Shown here in pieces: positions 7,821 through 58,464 of a stretch of 64,000 nucleotides of DNA. The stretch spans positions 372,001-436,000 of the forward strand of contig CAJFCJ010000027.1 in NCBI GenBank assembly GCA_904063045.1, given 5' to 3'. Under the pieces are notes generated by a model that worked only from the letters and a program-made list of their open reading frames with translations, searched no databases and had not been told where the DNA came from. The stretch is from Dimorphilus gyrociliatus. Taxonomy: Eukaryota; Animalia; Annelida. Numbering within the stretch: the stretch's first letter is position 1; the number at the start of each line of letters is the position of its first letter. The translations under genes were made by a program, and so were the position numbers.

Positions 7821-9412
7821 ATGTTTTTATTAAAAAAAAAACAAAGAAGAGACAAAAGAAAAAGGAGAGTCTTATCTGTTTCTTTTTGTAAACATAAGAT
7901 CTTATTAAATAATAAACGAAATATACTAATTAATAGTAATTTCTCCCTTTATTCTTATAATACAGTTTGTTATTTCTTTATCATTTTAGGTATTTAGAGG
8001 TTAACTAAGAGTTTATACACAGGTCAAAAATGTCACGAATGTTACCTATAAATATAAAAGGTGTACAAAATTTCCTAATTCGTAATATCTAATTCTTTAA
8101 TAGATAGATATAATTTCTATTTTCTATTATTAATCCATTCTAAATTGGCGTTAATCGTGATGGACTATATTTATTTTTACCTAGAAACATTCCAAACATT
8201 CAATCTAAGAACAATGCTTAAATATACTTCACTATAAATATTCTATATATTTAGTTCTGAAGAACGACAAGTCTGTAATAATCAAAAATCTTCAAACGTA
8301 TTGATGTATAAAGATAAAAGTGAGAAATTGTTTTGCAATGATTCAAATGTCCCTCATTCAACTTATAGGCTTATAGACAGTACTAATTTTTAAATAACGG
8401 TGGCCTATATCAAAGTGATAACAAATGTAGAACGACACGAATATACTTCTTCGTATAAAGAGTTCATTTACTCTTTTAACATCGCAATACGTAATTAGTA
8501 TTTATTTAGCTTATTCCATTCAACTTTCATGATAATAATTCATTGTTAAAATGTTTGTCCAATAAACGTTGAATTTATTTAAGGCGGAAGTCGTAAACCA
8601 AAAAAACATCATTGTCAGCAATTAAAAACAAAGGAGAAAATGACTAAGCAAGGCAACGAATTAGAAAAAAAGGCACATCCTTACAAAAAATAGTCAAAAG
8701 TCAATGAAATAACGTTTTTGAAATAGAAAACTATAACATAAATTAAAATGTAAGCAGAAAATATTCAAAAAGAATAAAACAACAGTTCTATTATTTGTTG
8801 GGTTTCTTTCAATATTTGATTGCAGTTGTTTGCTAAAAAGAAATAAAAATGTCTGAAAGCACTTTTAGTAGAAAACCTTTGAACGACTTCGAGATAAAGA
8901 AACTATGTTTTTTAACTTTTGCTATCTCCTACACAAAAATTAATCATCTTCTAAACGGGAAAAACCTATTGTTTAAGATTCTAAACAACACGTATTATAT
9001 CGAGTTTATATAGAATAATAGAGAAATGAAAGAATACATTAAATAGGTATATAGTTCATCATATTCATCTATTTTTTGAATATATTTTTAACCATTTACA
9101 AGGCTTATAAAAAATGTATTACCACAGAAAATATGAATCACAAAGCAACCGTCAAATTACGTCATAAAGACGGAAGTAAACTACTTTTTTCAAGTTTATT
9201 TGAAACAAACTACTTTTACAACTATATTCAATTAAATTCTTGTCAACGTAATGATTAATAACCTCTTATAAAATTTTTTTATATATCTGATGCATGAAAA
9301 CTCGTAGAAAATATGCAAAGATAATATATTAGCATATTAAAGGTGTGGCGCTTATGATATCTTATCAAAACTTTACTAATTTCTATAGGCTAGCTGCGCT
9401 CTCATCTAAGTG

Positions 9413-9419
9413 TATAAAA
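9413..9419 (+). promoter_or_regulatory. candidate TATA box of Cys-rich gene 1 (same motif at 17012-17018 for gene 2)
   Basis: TATAAAA about 60 bp upstream of ATG 9474. Position is compatible with a core promoter but there is no TSS data, and the sequence is AT-rich. Confidence 0.4.
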
Positions 9420-9473
9420 AGGCAGCAGACTGCATTAGAACACATATCAACTCGAGGAACACTCATATCAACA

Positions 9474-10824
9474 ATGGTCGCAATCAAACTTTTAATACTA
9501 TGCTCAGCTGTTGCTGTAGCTTTAGGTAAAAGAATATCTTCTTTATGTTTTCTTTAACTTCTACTCTATTCTCTTTACTTGCATCTTTCATTCTTCTCTT
9601 TCTTTATAGCAAAAATTGACAATGGTAAAACGTGTCTTCGAATGAAAAGTTATTGTGTTGAGAACGCCGAATGCAAAGGGTAACTTTAGTATTTTTAACT
9701 ATCATTTATACATATGTATACTAGTATACTAATATACTATATACATTCAAACAATGTTCTTTTACGGTTATTAGCAATATCTTTATTCTATTATATTTTT
9801 TTAGAACTGAAGATTCAAAATGGAACTGTTTATTAGGAACATGCGAATGTAAGAATGGTTACTTTCCAAAGTCACCTACAGAATGCGCTAAATATAGTAT
9901 GTCATCATTGTTATAAAAAAAACACGTTCATTTTAATTAATAATATATCCTATAGAGGACTTTGGTGAAACATGTACCGGTAATGGAGATAGGTGTAATA
10001 CTAAAAATTTGATTTGCGATACTACTTGTAAATGTAAAGACGATAAATTTGAAATAGACGGTACTGGATGTAAACTTAAAAAAAATGAAGAGAAAGAACT
10101 TAAAGATGCCTGCACAGAAGATTTGCAATGTGTTAAAGGTAATGAATTTGAAGTAAACTTAACGTTATATATTGAAAATTCACTTTGAAAATAATAGGTC
10201 TTGCAAAGGGTTCTGCTAGTTGCCAGGGAGGAACTTGTAAATGTCTTCCGCCTTGGACAACTGTTGGTAAAACGTGTGTAAATCAAGAATATGATAAATC
10301 CTGCAAAGATGCAGATACAGCAAGTGAAAAATGTAGACGAGGAACTGAAAATCTTGAATGTAAGAGCGATAAATGCGTCTGCAAAACCGATTTTAAATAT
10401 AACGCACGAGTAAAGAAGTGCCTGCACAAAGATTGTAAGTTTGAATTATTGATATTAATATTATAAATTAGCAGATTGTATATTTGAATATTGATATATT
10501 TTGCTAATTTGAATAGCTAGAGAGAATAGGAAGGAAGGAGAAACTTGTTCACCTGCAATCATCGCAGACAACACAAAATGGGATATTTGTGAAAATAAAT
10601 TTGTCTGCAGAAAATGTTCAAGTGACACCTCTGCTGATGGATTCTGTGTTGATGGTAAGTGTTGGAAGAATAATTATCAATTTATAACAAATGATTAATA
10701 ATTGTATTATCATTTCTTTTTCTCAGTCAATAAAGTCAATCCGAATAATTGTAATGGATCAGCCAACATTTCTGCAAGCGTTGCACTACTATTGACAGCC
10801 GTTTTAGCTTTTTTGGCTTACTAA
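9474..10824 (+). CDS. Cys-rich EB/EGF-like-module surface protein, GPI-anchored, cluster gene 1 (289 aa)
   Basis: Exons 9474-9525, 9610-9679, 9805-9896, 9956-10138, 10198-10434, 10517-10654, 10727-10824 (intron phases 1,2,1,1,1,1). Signal peptide MVAIKLLILCSAVAVAL; repeated C-x5-8-C-x-C-x4-C-x-C-x8-12-C modules; C-terminus NCNGSANISASVALLLTAVLAFLAY* (small residues, spacer, terminal hydrophobic tail = GPI-signal-like). Confidence 0.92.
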
Positions 10825-11604
10825 TTAAGTAGTAAGAACAATGGTTATAGAATTATAAATGATTGTATTTTTTGTACAATTTCTATGTAAAAGAGAGAAT
10901 TTTGTGTTAATATTTTCTACTGATGTTTAATGAATATGACAAATGCACTTTTGAAATAAAATTTAAGATTGAAGAAGAAGAGTGATATTTTTAAGAAAAT
11001 AGTCAGAGTGCATTTTGATGATTTCATTAAACGATTGAAGTTTAATAATTTAATAAATTATTGTATGAATAAAAAAATAAACAAATGAAAAAGAAATATG
11101 AATCTATATTTAAACTTGATGAAACGAGAGAAATATGTTGTTTTTTAACAAAGATAAGACTTTTATTCGAAATTATCAAGATAATTAAAAACATTCTTTT
11201 CCTTTCACTGAATAGATATATATATATACTATTTAAAGAAATATCGCCTATTATTGGTACTTTTATTCTTTGGTTCTCTATCTCAATTCCTGATTGATTT
11301 TATTCCTAATTTATTGTTTATTCCGAAAAGTACGATCTATTTTAGTGTTCTTCATAGGTATTTCTCGTTTGTTTGTTTTTCTTTGTTTTATACTTAGACT
11401 TGTTGTTCAGGACGAGCTTGGTCAGGTACAAAGACTTTATCAGTAAGATAACAACTAATGGATAAGTTTGAACTTGGAATATATTACAATTTGCGTTGCA
11501 TGAGAATAAGAAAATATATTTCTTTTTTTAAAGCTGTATTATTTGAAAATAGAATTATTCAATTATTACAGTTTTTTTCATAAATAACTAGGCAACAATA
11601 CAAC

Positions 11605-12370
11605 TCAGAAGCAAGGTCGACAAGAGCAAGACTTTGGCCATTTAATTTTTGCCCATTTAATTCTTATTTCCTTCAATTCTTCATCGTAGCATCTTATCAT
11701 TAACTTTTTCGTTTCAATTTTTGTTGGAACGCAACAATTACAATAGCTAGAGAAGAACAAATAATGAAAGAGCATAAGAAATTACAATTTAGAATATGAT
11801 AAAGAACACCAAGCAATTCCTTATATAGCTATTATATATTTCCTATTTTTATTATTCACCTGTCGTAGGTTTTGTTGGCCATGTTCAGTTCCGTATAGGA
11901 TCGACATTTTCCACTACAGGCCGTTAAAAGTGTTTTTTTTATCTAGTTTTATAATAAAACAGCATGGAAAACAAAGAAAAAAACCGATTTTATTAGTCAG
12001 GTTATATTTTTGTTGTACTAAAATGTTTACTTATTGCCACCACCTGTTTGATACTATTAGAGTTCTTATTTTACCTGACATTTGGAGACTTTAATTGTAT
12101 AGATAATCCTTTTTGGTCGGCAAGAGTTGGAGGATTGTCTTTGTCCATCGAGTAAACTCGCGTATAACAATATATAAAATGCATAAAATAGAATTTTCTT
12201 CTGAAAAAAAGTTGTTAAAAGAAATGAAAGAAAAGAAAGGAAAAGAAGAGAAGAATGAAACAGATAAACGAAGCTATTCAATTCTTTTCCTTTTAAATAT
12301 AATATGACAGTAATACCAAAAATGTATATATATATATTTATATAATATATTTAATACTAACTGAGAACAT
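11605..12370 (-). CDS. secreted 11-Cys cystine-knot protein, bursicon-alpha-like (also Norrin/CTCK-like), 119 aa
   Basis: Minus-strand exons 12370-12362 (ATG TTC TCA|gttagt, least certain), 12200-12075, 11942-11860, 11746-11605; phases 0,0,2. Protein MFSKKILFYAFYILLYASLLDGQRQSSNSCRPKRIIYTIKVSKCQIKKTLLTACSGKCRSYTELNMANKTYDSYCNCCVPTKIETKKLMIRCYDEELKEIRIKWAKIKWPKSCSCRPCF*. Cys spacing 13-9-3-16-CxCC-13-20-CxCRPC matches insect bursicon alpha as recalled. Confidence 0.88.
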
Positions 12371-15334: not shown

Positions 15335-16171
15335 CAGTAATCCGCATAAATTTTGGAACACCCTAAATTTTGATAGGCCAAATTTAAAATAACGGTCAAA
15401 AATGTTTTTTCCCACGAAAATAGTTGTTTTTGTCTAAATTTATATAGATAAAGAGTAATATTTACGTAATATTGAAAAAAAATTGAGAAAATGATGATAT
15501 TTGGGAATATTATTAGTAAAATATTTTTCATAATTAAGAGCAACAGCAAGGGTTTTGTGGATGGCACCATCATCAATTAGCAATATTCTATGATACAATC
15601 CACCAGAACAGGAGAATAGGGATCGTCCAAAGAGACTTACAGAGAGAGACATAGGCAGGATGAAAGAATAATAAAGAAATTGAAAATAAATAAGGAAAGG
15701 TGATAGCAGGAAAAATTTTTACAGGAATTAAAAGTAGATGTAAGCATAGCAACTATTCAGATGGAGCTGAAAAGACAAAATTTCAAATATGAATGAGTGA
15801 GACAAAGACGTGACCTCACATCCAACAATTGCGAAAAAAGAAAAACATATTGCCTTAAAATGATCAGTGATAATCTAGACTGGTCTAAAGTAATTTTCAC
15901 CAACGAGGCTAGATTCTCACTGAGTGGCCCTGATGACTTCAGAACATGGACAAATCATAGTGAAAAAAACTTCAGGGTGACGAAAAATATGGGCAGAGGT
16001 AGAGTAATGGTTTGGGGACTCATAGCATCTGATGGAATATTTGAGATATGGAGCATAGAGAAAAAACTGAATGCTGACAACTATAGCAGTTTTATTGTTG
16101 AAGATATTCTGCCTGTAATAAAAGATATATCAGCTAAAATGGGGAGGCAGTACATCTTCCAGCAAGACAAT
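15335..16171 (+). mobile_element. Tc1-like DNA transposon remnant (left end plus truncated, inactivated transposase)
   Basis: TA|CAGTAATCCGCATAAATTTTGGAACACCC left TIR at 15335. HTH-like LRATARVLWMAPSSISNIL and DRPKRLTERD (GRPR-like) with stops and frameshifts; WSKVIFTNEARF (first catalytic D changed to N), GRVMVWG, YIFQQDN. Truncated immediately after QQDN; no right TIR found. Confidence 0.9.
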
Positions 16172-16315
16172 GATAAATCCTGCAAAGATTCAGATACACC
16201 AAGTGAAAAATGTAGACGAGGACTTGAAAATCTTGAATGTAAGAATGATAAATGTGCCTGCAAAGCAAACTACTTTTACAACTATATTCAATAAAATTCT
16301 TGTCAACGCAATGAT
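16172..16315 (+). pseudogene. exon-5 remnant of a sixth Cys-rich cluster paralogue, fused in frame to the Tc1 transposase
   Basis: DKSCKDSDTPSEKCRRGLENLECKNDKCACKANYFYNYIQ*NSCQRND aligns with exon 5 of genes 1 and 2 (DKSCKDADTASEKCRRGTENLECKxDKCVCK...C..KD) but differs from both. Contains a premature stop and the splice donor is lost. Confidence 0.85.
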
Positions 16316-16386
16316 TAATAATCTCGTATAAAATTTTTTTATATATCTGAAGCATGAAAACTCATGGAAAATATGCAAAGATAATA

Positions 16387-16923
16387 CAGTACCGATAGCC
16401 TAAATTTGAACACCATTCTTTTTATGAAAATTAATTTTTTTCAACTTTGGCCTAAGCAAGTTGTTTTTTAGAGAAATTAAAATGAAGACAGAATTATCTA
16501 TCTTTACTTGAGAATTATAAAAGCTGTATTTAATACAAACTAGATAAGAAAAATATGTCTTTTCATCAACGAGGTGTTTAAATCGATTTTTCTATATTTT
16601 TTAAAATAAGAATAATGAAGTTGCAAAAGGTAAAAATGAAAATCATTTTGCAACAGTGTTAGATAATTTGTGAAAATTATTCTTGAACATTTATCACTTA
16701 CAACTTTTAATTAATTAACCAATTTAGTCAATTTTTGCATAAATCAATAATTTTCTTATTTCTATTGTGATAAACAAAGATTTTATAAATTTCGCTTAAA
16801 GATAGATAAGCTGTCCTTATTTTAACTTCTCTTTAAAACATTTTGTTTAGGCCAAAAAAAAGAAAAATTCATTTTTGTAAAAAAAAAAAGAAAAAAGTAT
16901 CTAAAAATAGGGTATCTGTACTG
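16387..16923. mobile_element. 537-bp non-autonomous Tc1/mariner-type element (MITE) with TA target-site duplication
   Basis: TA|CAGTACCGATAGCCTAAATTTG ... CTAAAAATAGGGTATCTGTACTG|TA. Imperfect inverted similarity extends about 80 bp (ttggcctaa/ttaggccaa). The paralogous empty site at 9320-9333 (gataaTAtattagc) has a single TA. No coding capacity. Confidence 0.93.
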
Positions 16924-17072
16924 TATATTAGCATATTAAAGGTGTGGCGCTTATGATATCTTATCAAAACTTTACTAATTTCTATAGGCTAGCTGCGCTC
17001 TCATCTAAGTGTATAAAAAGGCAGCAGACTGCATTAGAACACATATCAACTCGAGGAACACTCATATCAACA

Positions 17073-18367
17073 ATGGTCGCAATCAAACTTTTAATACTAT
17101 GCTCAGCTGTTGCTGTAGCTTTAGGTAAAAGAATATCTTCTTTATGTTTTCTTTAACTTCTACTCTATTCTCTTTACTTGAATCTTTCATTCTTCTCTTT
17201 CTTTATAGCAAAAATTGACAATGGTAAAACGTGTCTTCGAATGAAAAGTGATTGTGTTGATAACGCCGAATGCAAAGGGTAACTTTAGTATTTTTAACTA
17301 TCATTTATACATATGTATACTAGTATACTAATATACTATATACATTCAAACAATGTTCTTTTACGGTTATTAGCAATATCTTTATTCTATTATATTTTTT
17401 TAGAACTGAAGATTCAAAATGGAACTGTTTATTAGGAATATGCGGATGTAAGAATGGTTACTTTTCAAAGTCAGCTACAGAATGCGCTAAATATAGTACG
17501 TCATCATTGTTATAAAAAAAAACACGTTCATTTTAATTAATACAGTGTCTTTTAGGGGACTTGGATCAAGATTGTTCTAATACTGCTGGTGACGGAAAAC
17601 TATGCGATCCAGGCAGAAATATGATGTGCTATGCTGCTATTTGTAAATGTAGAAACGATAAATTTGAAAGAGACGGTACTGGATGTAAACTTAAAATTTC
17701 TGAAGAGAAAACACTTAAACAGACCTGCACTGAAGATTTGCAATGTGTTAAAGGTAATGAAATTGAAGTAAACTTAACGTTATATATTGAAAATTCACTT
17801 TGAAAATAATAGGTCTTGCAATGGGTTCTGCTAGTTGCCAGGGAGGAACTTGTAAATGTCTTCCGCCTTGGACAACTGTTGGTAAAACGTGTGTAAATCA
17901 AGAATATGATAAATCCTGCAAAGATGCAGATACAGCAAGTGAAAAATGTAGACGAGGAACTGAAAATCTTGAATGTAAGAACGATAAATGCGTCTGCAAA
18001 ATCGATTTTAATTATAACACACGAGTAAAGAAGTGCCTGCACAAAGATTGTAAGTTTGAATTATTGATATTAATATTATAAATTAGCAGATTGTATATTT
18101 GAATATTGATATATTTTGCTAATTTGAATAGCTAGAGTGAATAGGAAGGAAGGAGAAACTTGTTCACCTATAATCATCGCAGACAACACAAAAAAAGATA
18201 TTTGTGAAAGTAAATTTGTCTGCAGAAAATGTTCAAGTGACACCTCTGCTGATGGATTCTGTGTTGATGGTAAGTGTTGGAAGAATAATTATCAATTTAT
18301 AACAAATGATTAATAATTGTATTATCATTTCTTTTTTTCAGTTAACAAAATCAATTGTAATGGATAA
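17073..18367 (+). CDS. Cys-rich EB/EGF-like-module protein, cluster gene 2 (270 aa); TAA before the GPI tail predicts a secreted form
   Basis: Exons 17073-17124, 17209-17278, 17404-17495, 17556-17753, 17813-18049, 18132-18269, 18342-18367. Ends VNKINCNG* (TAA 18365-18367, TCA in gene 1). The hydrophobic tail remains open to TAA 18428-18430. Confidence 0.88.
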
Positions 18368-19061
18368 ACCATCATTTCTGCAAGCGTTGCACTACTATTG
18401 ACAGTCGTTTTAGCTTTTTTGGCTTACTAATTAAGTAGTGCGAACGATATAAATGAAATGTTGATGCTTATAGTTTATCAGTGAAATTTTATAAAAGTCA
18501 TAAACAGTGTTAATTATAAGATTAAAGAAGGCATAAAAAGATTTACGAAATTGTAAGTTGTTTGTTAATTATTACACGTTAAAGTTGGAAAAGAAACAAA
18601 AGATACGATTCTTTTTCTTCCTACACAGGATTACTATCTGTATCATATTTTTGACGTTTTTTATTTTATTAAACAAGCTTTATCTGAATTTTGTCTTTGT
18701 TAGTATTCACAATTCAACAAAATTACTTTATCTTCAGATAAGGAGGGTTATAGAATAGACAAATAACATCTTTGAACGCTCTAATTGAAAATATATTCGT
18801 ATGAGTCATAAAAAATGTTCTTTATTCGTGAAAAACATCAGAGGAATATAATATAAGAAAAGAAAAACAATCAACATTTACCTATCTAATTTGCGTTAAA
18901 ACAGGAATTCGTGTTCAGAAATGAGTTTAACGACAATAAAATTATCTTTAATTAGTTGTAAAGTTAGCTTAGGAAATTACAAAGCGAATTTATGAATATA
19001 TACTTAATTAAATATTTATAAGAAATAAACTTTTAAATAGATTAATAATTTAATTGTTTAT

Positions 19062-20330
19062 TCAGCAAAACATTCTTCTAATAACCATAAAAATAATAGT
19101 TAGAACTATAAATTCATTAATCACACTGTTTTTTAGGCCTGAGTTTTTCGGAGGTTTTGTGTCATCTTCTAATAAAATAGAATTATTTTCTTGTATATTA
19201 CAAGTACAGTTGGATTGAAATTGAATAAAATCTAACCGTTTACGCAACGATCTTTTAGTTTTGCGTCATCAGAACAACCATAACAAAAGAATTCCGTCTT
19301 ACATAATTGAACAGGGTCTGCTTTACCTTTTGGTACAGGTGTACAAGTTTCCAAATAATCTCTATCAATAACGGCTGTTGAATGATTTTTTTAAAATAAA
19401 TAAAACACTATTAATTGAATATGAAACTCTATAAAACCCACAGCCTTCCTTTAAACACATATTTCTCTTCCATGTAAAAGTTGATTTACACTTGCATACT
19501 TTGTCCTTACACTCCATATTTTTATCTTCAGTTCCTCTACACTTCTCCGACGATTTGCCATCCTGACAAGACTCCCCATAGTTTTGTTTAACGCATTTAT
19601 CACCAACAGTTGTTGCGTCAAAATAACATTTACATTTGTTGTCTTGACAGAAAGCGTTACTTAACCTATCTAAAGTATAGAACTGATAAATCCATTGATT
19701 AGTTTTAAAGACTTTATACTTACCTTTACTACATTCATCGCTATTCTCACAAGTTTCGCCAAGTCCTTTTCTAGCCGAATTCTTTAAAATACATCCTTTC
19801 GGATTTTCTCCATCAGGTTCGTAATTTTCTTTACAAATGCACTTTTCATTCTCACATTGCAGTTTAATAGCTTCATAGCACATTTTTTTAGCATTATCTT
19901 TTTCGCAGTCTTCTCCTAAAGTTTCTATTTAATTGAAATAAGTTTATTGAAATGAATTAAATACTGTACATTCAAAATTATTCATACAAACTTAATTTAT
20001 GACATTGATTTCCATCAATCGAAAAATCGAATTTACAAAGACAAGTTCCATATCTACATATCGAAATAGCATTACCAGTTCTGTGAATATTATTTGAATA
20101 AAATAACATTATTATAAGACAATCTTATATTCAAATTCTAACTGCACACAAGTTGAATTTGGTACTTTACAATCATTTTGTTTTACTTCACATCTATCAT
20201 TTAAATTTTCATTTCCTGAAAAAGATAACCCATTCGTTAAAAGTTTTAGTAAGATATAAATAATTTAATTCCTTTTACCGTAAGCGTAAAATGACATGAT
20301 AAATAGACAAATAACTTTTAGAAGAAACAT
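19062..20330 (-). CDS. Cys-rich EB/EGF-like-module surface protein, cluster gene 3 (295 aa)
   Basis: Minus-strand exons 20330-20279, 20215-20143, 20080-19992, 19924-19724, 19669-19442, 19374-19237, 19168-19062; same phases as gene 1. Signal peptide MFLLKVICLFIMSFYAYG; hydrophobic C-terminus SVINEFIVLTIIFMVIRRMFC*. Confidence 0.9.
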
Positions 20331-21172: not shown

Positions 21173-22445
21173 ATGATCAAATTAATTATATTATTTTTGA
21201 TATACTACTCTCCTTATCTGAATGCATGTAAGATATTATTTAATATAGTTATATAGAAATACAATATAAATGGTTATTAATTCAAAATTATAGCTTCTCA
21301 ATTCAAGATCTATGGAGATTTATGCGAATCTGATAGGAATTGTACAAAAGAATCATCAGTGTGTCTCAAGTATTTACATAATATTCCTTTGTTAAAATTT
21401 TAGTTAACTTATACTATTTATTATTAAATGTTTTAGGCTTGCACAGGATGAGGCGAGACAATGCAAGATAGGATATTGCGCCTGTGCTAATGGTTATTAT
21501 ATGTCGGAGGAAGAATGCAAGAAACAGAGTGGGTACCTTCTATTTTCTAAATACGTTTTATCTTATTTCGTTAAAATATATTTAGAAAGTTATAACGAAA
21601 ATTGCGACAAAGATATAGCTTGTGCCAGAAACTTAGTGTGTGTGAATAATAAATGTGCATGTAGAGATTTATTCGAAAGAGATCCTTCAAACCCTTCTTC
21701 TTGTGTTTTGAAAGAGAATGAAAAAAAAGCACTTGGGGAATCATGTCTTGCTAGCGTACAGTGCGTTAAAAGTAAAGTATTCTATTTATATAAAAATCTT
21801 AATTATCATTAAACATCTTATTTAAAAACTAGATGGATTAAAGCATGCCGCATGTTTCATCTTTCAATGCAAGTGTGCTGTATCTTATACAACAGTTGGT
21901 GACAAGTGTATTGAACAAAAATACGATGATAACTGTAAAGATGGTACTATATCCGAGAAATGTAAAGGACTTGGAGACACCAATATGATGTGCACAGCTA
22001 ATGATATTTGCAAATGTAAAGATGGTTATGAACGTAAAAGAAATGGTTGTTTTAAAATCGGCTGTAAGTTGATAGTAAAAATAGATGATTGTACAACATT
22101 ATCCATATTTTCTACTGTTCTATTCATATTTTGAATGATTCATTTAAGGTAGTGCCATCTCTTGTCTCTCGTGAAGTTTAGAGTGGTAACGATAAAACAG
22201 TGTTTCCAGTTTCCTGAGTAGGAAAACAGATTAAGTCTGTTTGGAGGTGATGAAAGATATGAAGAAATTTGCTATGGCAAAAATGCTACAATCTTAGTCC
22301 AGATGTATTAATTAAAAATCCTAAAAAATTCTATTATAAAAGGCGTTTGAACAAACAGACGTTTATATGGTCGCTCTCTTCAGTTAAAAAACCTAATAGA
22401 AGTAACAAAGAAATGTCATAATTTTAAAAATTGTAGTTTTTAAAC

Positions 22446-22482
<37 letters not shown>

Positions 22483-23097
22483 CACACACACACACACACA
22501 CAGAGAAGAAAAACAATGCTATAAACCAACAATCATGTGTATTTTTCCCATGTTTATAAAAACAGAATTCAAGTATGTCACAACAGACTAAGCATACTAT
22601 TATTTACCGGTTTCTAGTACTAAAATATAAGAGATTTTTACCTAGAAGTCATTATTTTCTATTAATTAAATTACTTAACAATTCTCTTTTTTCCCTACTT
22701 TGCCAAGTAATTATATTATTTATGAAATAATTTTAATATACGTATTTTATTATTACTTATCAGGTAATAATTAAATAACTAGTTCTCTTTTTATGTCATT
22801 TTCCAGCCATTTATGATAGAGATGTTGGTGAAAGTTGTTCTATACACGACATAGGAAATATTAATCGTGTAGCAATGTGCAAAGAGGATTCAGTTTGCCA
22901 GGTTTGCTCACACAAACCTACTAGTCTTCCAAAATGTGTTAGAAGTAAGTTAATCGAAAGAGCAAAGTGTATGAAACTAAAAATTTTTCTTTTTTAAATC
23001 CACTGTAGAAAATGAATCAGAAAATTCAAGTGAATTAGTACTACCAAACATTGGAACAATTCTATTTTCTGGATTATTTTATCTGTTTAGACTATGA
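21173..23097 (+). CDS. Cys-rich EB/EGF-like-module surface protein, cluster gene 4 (288 aa)
   Basis: Exons 21173-21227, 21294-21369, 21437-21528, 21586-21771, 21833-22063, 22807-22944, 23009-23097; same phases. Signal peptide MIKLIILFLIYYSPYLNA; tail NSSELVLPNIGTILFSGLFYLFRL*. Confidence 0.9.
22446..22502. repeat. compound (AG)n(AC)n microsatellite in intron 5 of cluster gene 4
   Basis: Read directly. Other long dinucleotide tracts include (TC)n 26109-26142 and (TA)n 46146-46177. Confidence 0.95.
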
Positions 23098-23752
23098 TTT
23101 ATCAATTCTGTTTCTTTTCATCAATTATTCTAATAAAGAGAAAGTTTCTTTTATTTCATTACATTTAAAATTTAAAGTAGTTTAATTATAAAAATAATCA
23201 ATAGAGCAAATAGTCAACGGTGTATGTAGTGACTTATTTAGCTTGTTGTTTATAGGAAAACAGTGAGGTGAATGACCATTAGATTATCATCTATTTGCAT
23301 AATTTCCAAATAGATTTCATCACTGTCCTTTTTATAAGGGAAAATCGTATAATCATTAAAGACATGTATAAAGACAATAAATCTCTCTTTCTATTAGACT
23401 ATTGATTAGTTCTGATCAAAATTTAAGTTTTAGTTTCCCCTTAATGGAGCGTTAATATTTTTTATTCACTGTTCTGATAAGAAGCTATATTTACTGTCAA
23501 AAATGGACTAATGTTAATGTTACAATCAATTTAGTACTTGACATTATCACTATTCACTAATGAATATCATTTTTTTCATATATATACTGTGTATATCATA
23601 AAGGATAGTAAACTTTAAATGGAAATCTACTAGCAAAACTAAGGCAACGAGATTTGGAAAAGAACGTAATAAAACTTACTTTTATTGATATAAATATTTA
23701 ACAAGTAACATCTTACGCTTTTCAGATTAATATTTAATTGACTATTTAGAGA

Positions 23753-25047
23753 ATGATGGTTTATTTCTCTATATATATCTTTTTGAGTACAGTGTCAATT
23801 GTTATAGGTTAGCTTGAAGGGGAAAATGTATATTTTCTTGTAATTCGTAGACTATTTAAATATTTTATTATTTTTTAAGCAAAAAGTCATCTTGGAGAAG
23901 TTTGCAATCTGCAGATTGGTTGTGCTGATGGTAGTGGATCTTGTAACCAGTAAATAAGGAGTTAATTCTAGTTTAAAATTATTACTAATAGCTTAAAATG
24001 AATTATAATAATTTGTTTATGAATAGATATGGTTCGGATTACACTAACAAGTGTAAATACGGTGTATGTACATGCGGCAGCTTTAGTAATCAGGTTGATG
24101 ATAAATGCTACTCAACTAGTATATACTTATATAAAATTACATCTACAGTATACCTATTATATCTTTGTCATATTTAGAGACTTTTAATCAGAGTTGCGAG
24201 TTGGATAATCCTAAAAATGAATGTAGGAAAGAATATCATCTATTCTGTAATGATAGTATATGTATTTGCGATAAGGGATACGAACAAAATATGATAAATA
24301 TGAGAAAATGTTATATAAAATCAAGTCAAGCGAAACGTTTAGGTGAAAAATGTAAGCATGCGGATGAATGTGTTAAAGGTAAAGAAGTAATTTAAGGTAT
24401 TTGCCTATAGGAATTTATCAACTAAGAATGTTTTACAGGCAGACTACGAAATGCAACCTGTAAAGACGGAAGATGCGTTTGTAAAGCGCAATACACAACA
24501 CACGGCTTTAGATGTATAAAACAAGAACACGGCCAATCTTGTAAACATGGTAGAGAGGGAGAAAAATGTAGAGGAACACTCGATAAAAATTTATTATGTA
24601 CGAATAATATTTGTTTATGCAAAATGGATTATATATGGATACTAGGATTATGTTTAAAAAAAGACTGTTAGTACATAAAGTTTTAATCAATTTCATTCAC
24701 TTTTCTTTAATTGTTATATAAAAAAATCCTTTTTCCACTAGCTGTCTTTAACAGAACGTTTAGTCAAAGTTGTACAGCAAAACCGAAAGGCAGAAGCAAA
24801 CCTGTTCAAATATGTAAATCTGGGTTACTTTGTCAAAAGTGTAACTATTCCCCCCTAAGACCCCGCTGTGTAAGAAGTAAGTTATTATTCTATAAAACAC
24901 GATAGATGAACTATAGATAATCTCTATACAACAATTTTTATAGCCGATGAATCAATCTCGTCCTATTCAGAAAATTTGAAAGCAGCAGCAAGCGATACTT
25001 TAAATATTTTTCAAATTGGAATGATTTATTATTTCATATTTATTTAA
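23753..25047 (+). CDS. Cys-rich EB/EGF-like-module surface protein, cluster gene 5 (294 aa)
   Basis: Exons 23753-23807, 23880-23949, 24027-24118, 24178-24378, 24439-24666, 24742-24876, 24944-25047; same phases. Signal peptide MMVYFSIYIFLSTVSIVIA; tail AAASDTLNIFQIGMIYYFIFI*. Confidence 0.9.
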
Positions 25048-49480: not shown

Positions 49481-49826
49481 AATAAGCTGATGGCAAGTTT
49501 TTAAGAAATTGAAAGAATACCTTGTTAGAGCAAAGAATGCTGCTAATTCAATATATTTATAATAAAACATCACATTTTTACACTTCTACAGTTTTTTTTG
49601 AATGTAGAAAATACACTTGGAACAGTTTCATCAGATATTGTATTAATACAATATAATAAGCTAATGGTAAGTTTTTAAGAAATTGAAATTACACCTTGTT
49701 AGAGAAAGAATGCTGCCAATTCAATATGTTTATAATAGAACATCACATTTTTACACTTCTACAATTTTGTTTAAATGGAGAAAATACACTTGGAATAGTT
49801 TCATCAGATATTGTATTAATACAGTA
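49481..49826. repeat. tandem duplication of a ~174-bp non-coding unit (2 copies)
   Basis: 49481-49654 and 49655-49826 share aataagct.atgg.aagtttttaagaaattgaaa...catcacatttttacacttctaca...tttcatcagatattgtattaataca, with scattered substitutions. Confidence 0.9.
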
Positions 49827-57739: not shown

Positions 57740-58464
57740 ATGAACAAGCTTCGAGCGAAGGCTTTATTTTTGGTTTTATTACAAGCTTCCATAACGTCAA
57801 CGTGTTTTATTAGAGATTGCCCACCAGGGGGTAAAAGAAATTTCAATATTCCTCAAGAGAATAACCAGGTGTGTAGAAATATTTTTAAAGTTTTTGGAAA
57901 ATTAACTTTTTTTTTCTCTCTGCTCTCCCTCTCCCCACCTCCTTTCCCCTTTCTGTCTCTCTTTCTCTTTGTACTCATTTGCTTTTCCCATCCGCTTTCC
58001 TTCCATTCCTCAATTCAATTCTAGTGCTCAAGATGCGGACCAAGAGATGAAGGACAATGTATTGCTCGTAATATTTGCTGCGGCTTTAGCATAGGTTGTT
58101 TAGTGCATAATGACTATGAGGAAGTTTGTTCAACTACAAATGAAAATTGCGAAATTAAAGGGGAAACTTGCGAAGCTGTTAATGGTGGAAAGTGTGTTAC
58201 TGATGGAATTTGTTGTAAACACGGTAAATCTCATAAAAATCGAATATTAAAAGAGAATTTAATTAATAAGATTTATAATTTCTTTTGTATTTTAAACTCT
58301 ATACATCTATATATATATATATACATGTAACAGGGAGATGTATGTTCGATATAAAATGTAAGGAAAGGAACTTAAAAATGGCCCGAAACAATAAAAATTT
58401 GATATTAAACCATTTAACGAGAGCACTGCTGCCTGAAAAAGAATTGGAATCTAATTTAGGATAG
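57740..58464 (+). CDS. vasotocin/conopressin-neurophysin precursor (152 aa); mature peptide CFIRDCPPG-NH2
   Basis: Exons 57740-57868, 58025-58223, 58334-58464 (phases 0,1, the canonical three-exon OT/VP layout). Signal peptide of 21 aa, nonapeptide 57803-57829, GKR amidation/cleavage site, 14-Cys neurophysin (CSRCGPRDEGQCIARNICCGFSIGC...CVTDGICCKHGRCMFDIKC), C-terminal extension. Confidence 0.96.

Follow-up and report, generated by a model that had tools for sequence, protein, structure and literature searches.

The window analyzed here is a 64,000-nucleotide stretch of contig 27 (positions 372001-436000) of Dimorphilus gyrociliatus, a tiny marine annelid worm whose assembly totals 77.9 Mb with 27% G+C. 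This published assembly, of ~78 Mb, was built from PacBio data of pooled animals (PMC7854359). Two tandem genes located ~7.6 kb apart, and publicly annotated as two genes, are the subject of this study. Gene 1 (DgyrCDS13726; 9474-10824, forward strand) encodes a protein of 289 aa, identical to P0001, from seven exons at 9474-9525, 9610-9679, 9805-9896, 9956-10138, 10198-10434, 10517-10654 and 10727-10824. Gene 2 (DgyrCDS13727; 17073-18430, forward strand; P0005) was assigned exons at 17073-17124, 17209-17278, 17404-17495, 17556-17753, 17813-18049, 18132-18269 and 18342-18430. The exon borders in the spliced models of both copies are canonical (AG/GT) and their phases match. Database searches were run exon by exon and later with the database proteins returned by the exon search; exons were spliced together locally only, for translation and for counting codon differences.

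The gene 1 protein consists of a signal peptide, four EB-like modules, a fifth and different cysteine module, and a hydrophobic C-terminal tail. The gene 2 model agrees with P0005 except at the annotated start, where the difference is an upstream start. Gene 2 lacks the hydrophobic tail, which is cut off by an in-frame TAA (18365-18367) in its exon 7; the public P0005 model likewise stops at ...NCNG, before the tail. The gene 2 product may represent a soluble form of a protein that is otherwise anchored. Three older paralogues follow downstream: gene 3 (19235-20124, reverse strand), gene 4 (21408-22994) and gene 5 (23992-24902). The public protein P0003 (531 aa; 21408-24902) merges genes 4 and 5, retains an in-frame intron of gene 4 and omits a portion of gene 5 exon 5; two genes have probably been mis-annotated as one.

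The tandemly repeated cysteine framework of the EB module, C-x-C-x-C-x-C-x-C ... C, is present in these proteins, and the cysteines from C49 onward are invariant over the stretch common to all four aligned sequences. They resemble EB proteins (PF01683) in having tandem small disulfide modules after a signal peptide and a hydrophobic tail at the end, and differ from them in that genes 1 and 2 score just under the Pfam gathering threshold (24.2 bits for P0001 and 21.8 bits for P0005, against 24.3 bits for the whole protein). The cluster paralogues, genes 3, 4 and 5, lie above it with 29.6, 32.4 and 26.3 bits, respectively. A full HMMER scan of 1.84 billion representative proteins with exon 5 returned four relatives, three of them from the same cluster. 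The fourth, P0002, is 39% identical, is encoded on an environmental contig of 941 nt and is absent from the D. gyrociliatus genome. A word search of the database with P0001 recovered genes 1 and 2 only, and the metagenome scan a single locus with 32% identity. Genes 1 and 2 belong to a lineage-restricted family of small cysteine-rich surface proteins. The best Foldseek matches in the PDB are tandem EGF arrays, at a weak level (E>=1e-3, TM<0.3), and Pfs25/Pvs25, GPI-anchored surface proteins with tandem EGF-like modules, are analogues in architecture.

Self-comparison of the window revealed that genes 1 and 2 are embedded in a shared block of 1.5 kb (9326-10842 for copy 1 and 16925-18448 for copy 2, both on the forward strand). 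Non-coding sites of this block differ at about 4 of 616 positions, with no difference in the 148 sites of the 5' flank and three in the 422 sites of introns 1, 2, 4, 5 and 6 together. Copy 2 of the block begins exactly at the right edge of a 538-bp MITE (16387-16924), which is flanked by a TA target-site duplication and bounded by terminal inverted repeats. The ends of the element are inverted copies of each other (ACAGTACCGATACCC...). The MITE is confined to copy 2, and gene 1 carries the intact empty site. At least ten full-length copies of the family are found in the genome. The element next to gene 2 is 92.5% identical to three copies which are themselves 100% alike; the family was therefore recently active, and the insertion by gene 2 is old because it is 7.5% diverged from these mutually identical copies.

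The MITE separates gene 2 from an older upstream flank (16263-16386, forward strand), which is 93.5% identical to 9203-9326 upstream of gene 1. Divergence changes abruptly at the element, from 8 of 124 sites on its left to 0 of 148 on its right, where identity is 100% (Fisher p=0.0016); against the whole non-coding part of the gene body (4/616), the difference of the left flank is stronger still (p=1.4e-4). From this step it follows that a copy stood at the gene 2 site before the MITE arrived, and that its gene body was subsequently overwritten. Genes 1 and 2 owe their near-identity to concerted evolution and not to recent duplication. A third copy, now lost, has left a 102-nt relic of its exon 5 (16163-16264, forward strand), 90-91% identical to the same exon in genes 1 and 2. 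An open reading frame at 15797-16291 (forward strand) fuses a Tc1/mariner transposase remnant (...WSKVIFTNE...GRVMVWG...YIFQQDND) to this relic (KSCKDSDTPSEKC...). Such a fusion, together with the about 10% divergence of the relic exon, indicates an older, eroded array.

Within this homogenized block, one short patch is strongly divergent. It occupies 9943-10030 in gene 1 and 17543-17645 in gene 2 (both on the forward strand). In both genes it takes in the final 13 nt of intron 3; from exon 4 it adds the first 75 nt in gene 1 and the first 90 nt in gene 2. The encoded peptides read ...YK DFGETCTGNGDRCNTKNLICDTTC KC... in gene 1 and ...YR DLDQDCSNTAGDGKLCDPGRNMMCYAAIC KC... in gene 2. The identity break, the two patch sequences and their peptides had been described in a first-pass annotation and read exactly so when the sequence was re-read and the spliced exons were translated; the spliced models also bear out that the gene 2 version is five residues longer and retains every cysteine. 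The patch spans three inter-cysteine loops of EB-like module 2, spaced C-x6-C-x6-C-x3-C in gene 1 and C-x9-C-x7-C-x4-C in gene 2, and falls at positions ~19-50 of the EB profile. The AlphaFold model of P0001 has a mean pLDDT of 66, with 75-85 in the patch region, which is modelled as irregular loops running into the first hairpin.

A maximum chi-square scan of the 1513-column alignment of the two genes placed the segment at 9943-10025 of gene 1, the coordinates at which the first-pass annotation had set the patch limits. The segment contains 35 differences in 86 columns, compared with 47 in the 1427 columns elsewhere, and its chi-square of 209 greatly exceeds the values from 300 shuffles (mean 16, maximum 53). 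The first 46 nt of intron 3 show one mismatch and one indel, and 6 of its last 13 bases differ, against the background of 4/616 (binomial p about 1e-10). Over the whole of exon 4, genes 1 and 2 differ by 39 mismatches and 15 gap columns. The flanks of the patch display shoulders of divergence: to its left, each 50 nt contain 2-5 differences, and to its right 4-10.

The two patches had been called unalignable at the DNA level, which is too strong a description. In a codon-aware alignment, 43 of 69 bases (62%) and 14 of 23 third positions (61%) are identical, and the three indels, of 9, 3 and 3 nt, are all in frame. Three of the four cysteine codons in the patch are identical, the second being TGT in one copy and TGC in the other, and so are both cysteine codons of the CKC motif just 3' of the patch. 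The patches of genes 1 and 2 are 39-51% identical to those of genes 3-5 overall and 28-48% at third positions, and are closer to each other than to these paralogues (binomial p=8e-4 for all positions, p=9e-3 for third positions). At the protein level, however, the two patches differ as much as old paralogues do, with 7 of 23 residues identical between genes 1 and 2, compared with about 6 of 23 for the old paralogues.

The Nei-Gojobori method gave a pS of 0.42 and a pN of 0.35 for the patch (pN/pS about 0.8), so that an excess of replacement over silent change is not found inside it; the corresponding Jukes-Cantor estimates are about 0.6 for dS and about 0.47 for dN. In the coding sequence outside the patch, pS is 0.028 and pN is 0.052. 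The patch has a history separate from that of its flanks, because selection on the protein cannot yield the silent changes together with the 6 of 13 changes in the intron. Mutually exclusive or otherwise alternative exons were rejected as an explanation of the two patch versions, intron 3 being only 59-60 nt long.

Outside the patch, exon sites differ at 36 of 795 positions and non-coding sites at 4 of 616, which is a ~7-fold excess in the exons (Fisher p=5e-6). Exons 2-6 contain 23 replacement codons and a single silent one (binomial p about 0.03). Neutral decay of gene 2 was rejected, since the introns would have been struck equally. Much of this divergence is gathered in three secondary islands on the forward strand. 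The island in exon 4 (10081-10116 = 17696-17731) carries AAAAAT>ATTTCT, GAA>ACA, GATGCC>CAGACC and one silent change, and that in exon 6 (10555-10596 = 18170-18211) carries GCA>ATA, TGG>AAA and AAT>AGT. The island at the start of exon 7 (10729-10767 = 18344-18373) combines an indel of 9 nt and the gene 2 TAA with two silent and four replacement changes. The three islands look like smaller versions of the patch. Codon changes involving several nucleotides, such as TGG>AAA and AAAAAT>ATTTCT, sit in an otherwise young part of the genes and hint at templated or clustered mutation.

Possible donors of the patch were sought in the genome. The DNA of either patch with short flanks, searched against the whole 78 Mb assembly at E<=10, matched only itself. 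With exon 4 as a protein query, the hits in the genome were the sister copy, gene 4 and a single contig 6 locus, 35-50% identical, and these were rejected as donors. Searching the patches against the window with blastn-short gave only chance 9-12-mers, such as AATATGATGTGC (exon 5 of gene 4, E=0.29). A whole-gene search of the genome yielded the two copies and the exon 5 relic only, with neither a third copy nor a haplotig. The suggestion in the first-pass annotation that the patch was imported from a paralogue by cassette-style diversification is accordingly unsupported, at both the DNA and the protein level, in this assembly. P0002 shares 9 of 22 patch residues with gene 1 and 5 of 24 with gene 2. 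Of the 41 residues that differ between the two genes, P0002 has the gene 1 state at 11 and the gene 2 state at 5, a difference that is not significant. The comparison gives a weak hint that gene 2 may be the more derived copy.

These analyses show the divergence peak, the gene conversion around it, the absence of a donor from the assembly and the replacement excess outside the patch. On the best reading, the patch may well be an old unconverted island within duplicates under concerted evolution, left standing as a peak of divergence. Genes 1 and 2 are read as old tandem duplicates encoding a small secreted or anchored EB-module protein, with interlocus gene conversion keeping them nearly alike. 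Conversion would have homogenized the stretch between the MITE edge and the patch on one side and that between the patch and roughly intron 6 on the other, while the patch itself would be a segment that conversion tracts did not cross and that retained a much older divergence. We infer an escape of the patch from conversion, not a replacement. Two causes probably combined: the mismatches and three indels of the patch would stop heteroduplex extension, and converted variants were probably selected against, as the two proteins would have diverged in role: the membrane- or GPI-type tail of gene 1 is missing from gene 2. It would presumably be selection on binding specificity that maintains the patch.

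Selection at the patch is plausible and not proven, since the load of mismatches and indels would by itself halt heteroduplex extension, and the pN/pS of about 0.8, in a comparison that rests on two sequences, is no direct proof of positive selection. The first-pass annotation had proposed that conversion homogenized everything except a selected specificity patch; the conversion stands, on the identity step at the MITE edge and the patch pS of 0.42, whereas a selected specificity goes beyond what the pN/pS ratio can carry. Two further observations weigh against an unconverted island. One is the multi-nucleotide codon changes in the otherwise young part of the genes. The other is that silent and intron divergence in the patch reaches ~44% of 27 sites, exceeding the prediction from the upstream flank (6.5%) or from the MITE (7.5% per lineage). 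Either the patch predates both of these markers or something else happened, and the excess points to long-running conversion around a never-converted segment or to a replacement event.

A replacement event would mean that ~100 nt were copied into gene 2, or else into gene 1, after full homogenization, from a third member of the subfamily whose donor copy was since lost or remains unassembled. We regard this as unlikely, though several features suit it. On the left the patch border falls 13 nt inside the intron, and on the right it coincides with the family-wide TGTAAATGT (CKC) motif, borders to be expected of a short tract whose donor had homologous flanks. The exon 5 relic attests at least one further copy in the past; the gene 2 patch is equidistant from all known sequences (5-7 of 22-25 residues identical, mostly cysteines), the outgroup P0002 and the gene 1 patch have 9 of 22 residues in common, and the multi-nucleotide codon replacements elsewhere could be micro-conversions. 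Import merely shifts the question, however, to how a donor with such similar flanks acquired a patch 40% diverged, and the shoulders of divergence suit an unconverted peak better than a clean insert. The donor is moreover absent from the 78 Mb by DNA or protein, the short-word matches in the window being those of chance. Equally doubtful is rapid divergence in place, whereby the patch was homogenized and then changed fast in one copy, driven by diversifying selection on the loops together with indels or clustered multi-nucleotide mutation. Rapid change in place has been proposed for the loops of cone-snail toxins. The roughly sevenfold faster divergence of exons relative to introns and the 23 replacements to one silent change are in keeping with it, as are codons with two or three altered bases in a background otherwise 99.4% identical. 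The in-frame indels, the identity of most patch cysteine codons and both CKC codons, and the clear common ancestry that the patch nucleotides keep also favour it. Protein selection is nevertheless unable to give 6 of 13 intron changes, or a pS of 0.42, while the introns gained 0.65%, and the local rate would have to rise roughly 60-fold to reach about 35 changes in 86 nt.

It is improbable that the patch and the multi-nucleotide replacements (TGG>AAA, AAAAAT>ATTTCT, GATGCC>CAGACC) are footprints of active diversification, either by templated micro-conversion from unassembled variable copies or by focal error-prone mutation of EB inter-cysteine loops. Such a process might act in several cysteine-rich gene families of this genome. 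Near-identical copies 7.6 kb apart in a PacBio assembly of pooled animals (PMC7854359) also raise the thought of an assembly or polishing artefact, with two alleles or a chimeric consensus set out as two loci. An artefact is very improbable: the surroundings of the copies differ in the MITE, the Tc1 remnant, the relic, a unique 5.4 kb spacer and the 3' flanks; the reading frame, splice site and cysteine framework are intact in both patches; and the genome holds no haplotig copy, the public annotation likewise having two genes.

The unconverted island has counterparts among known systems. A peak of divergence between duplicates under conversion and selection was reportedly treated by Innan in 2003 and by Teshima and Innan in 2008. 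Exon 5 of the human red and green opsins and RHD/RHCE are examples of such a peak (PMC3924837). The worm genes share with them the homogenized tandem copies, introns that are more alike than exons, and a sharp local peak. The peak of the worm is far more extreme, with about 40% divergence and three indels in contrast to a few substitutions, and its protein is an uncharacterized annelid EB-module protein. Snake venom PLA2, conotoxins and mussel MgCRP-I are disulfide-rich secreted proteins with accelerated evolution and conserved non-coding parts (PMC4558851). The conserved cysteine framework and signal region, the hypervariable loops, the greater divergence of exons than introns and, outside the patch, of replacement than silent sites are common to these and to the worm genes. 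The worm, however, has a single pair of close copies instead of a large variant family, and its patch also varies at silent and intron sites, beyond what selection alone would do. Cassette-style segmental gene conversion operates in trypanosome VSG, chicken Ig pseudo-V and Babesia ves1 genes (PMC4066756). There too, genes that are otherwise similar diverge from one another in a short internal segment; in the worm genome, by contrast, we found no donor archive and no mosaic set of variants.

The locus is a clean case of a known pattern and reveals by itself no new mechanism. It offers a sharp, well-bounded spiralian example of gene conversion set against divergence inside one small gene, with the MITE insertion as an internal time marker. 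The module 2 loops and the three islands mark the difference between a predicted anchored protein and its tail-less neighbour, and may tell which residues to swap in a hunt for ligands of the family.

Other features were observed in the window apart from these genes. A cysteine-rich open frame at 11608-11781 (reverse strand) ends with ...CSCRPC and has no Pfam match at E<=0.01. A unit of 173 nt occurs twice, head-to-tail and 91% identical, at 49481-49826. The open frame at 58025-58327 (forward strand) contains a neurophysin domain (PF00184, 53.8 bits), and probably represents exon 2 of a gene for a neuropeptide precursor of the vasopressin/oxytocin type.
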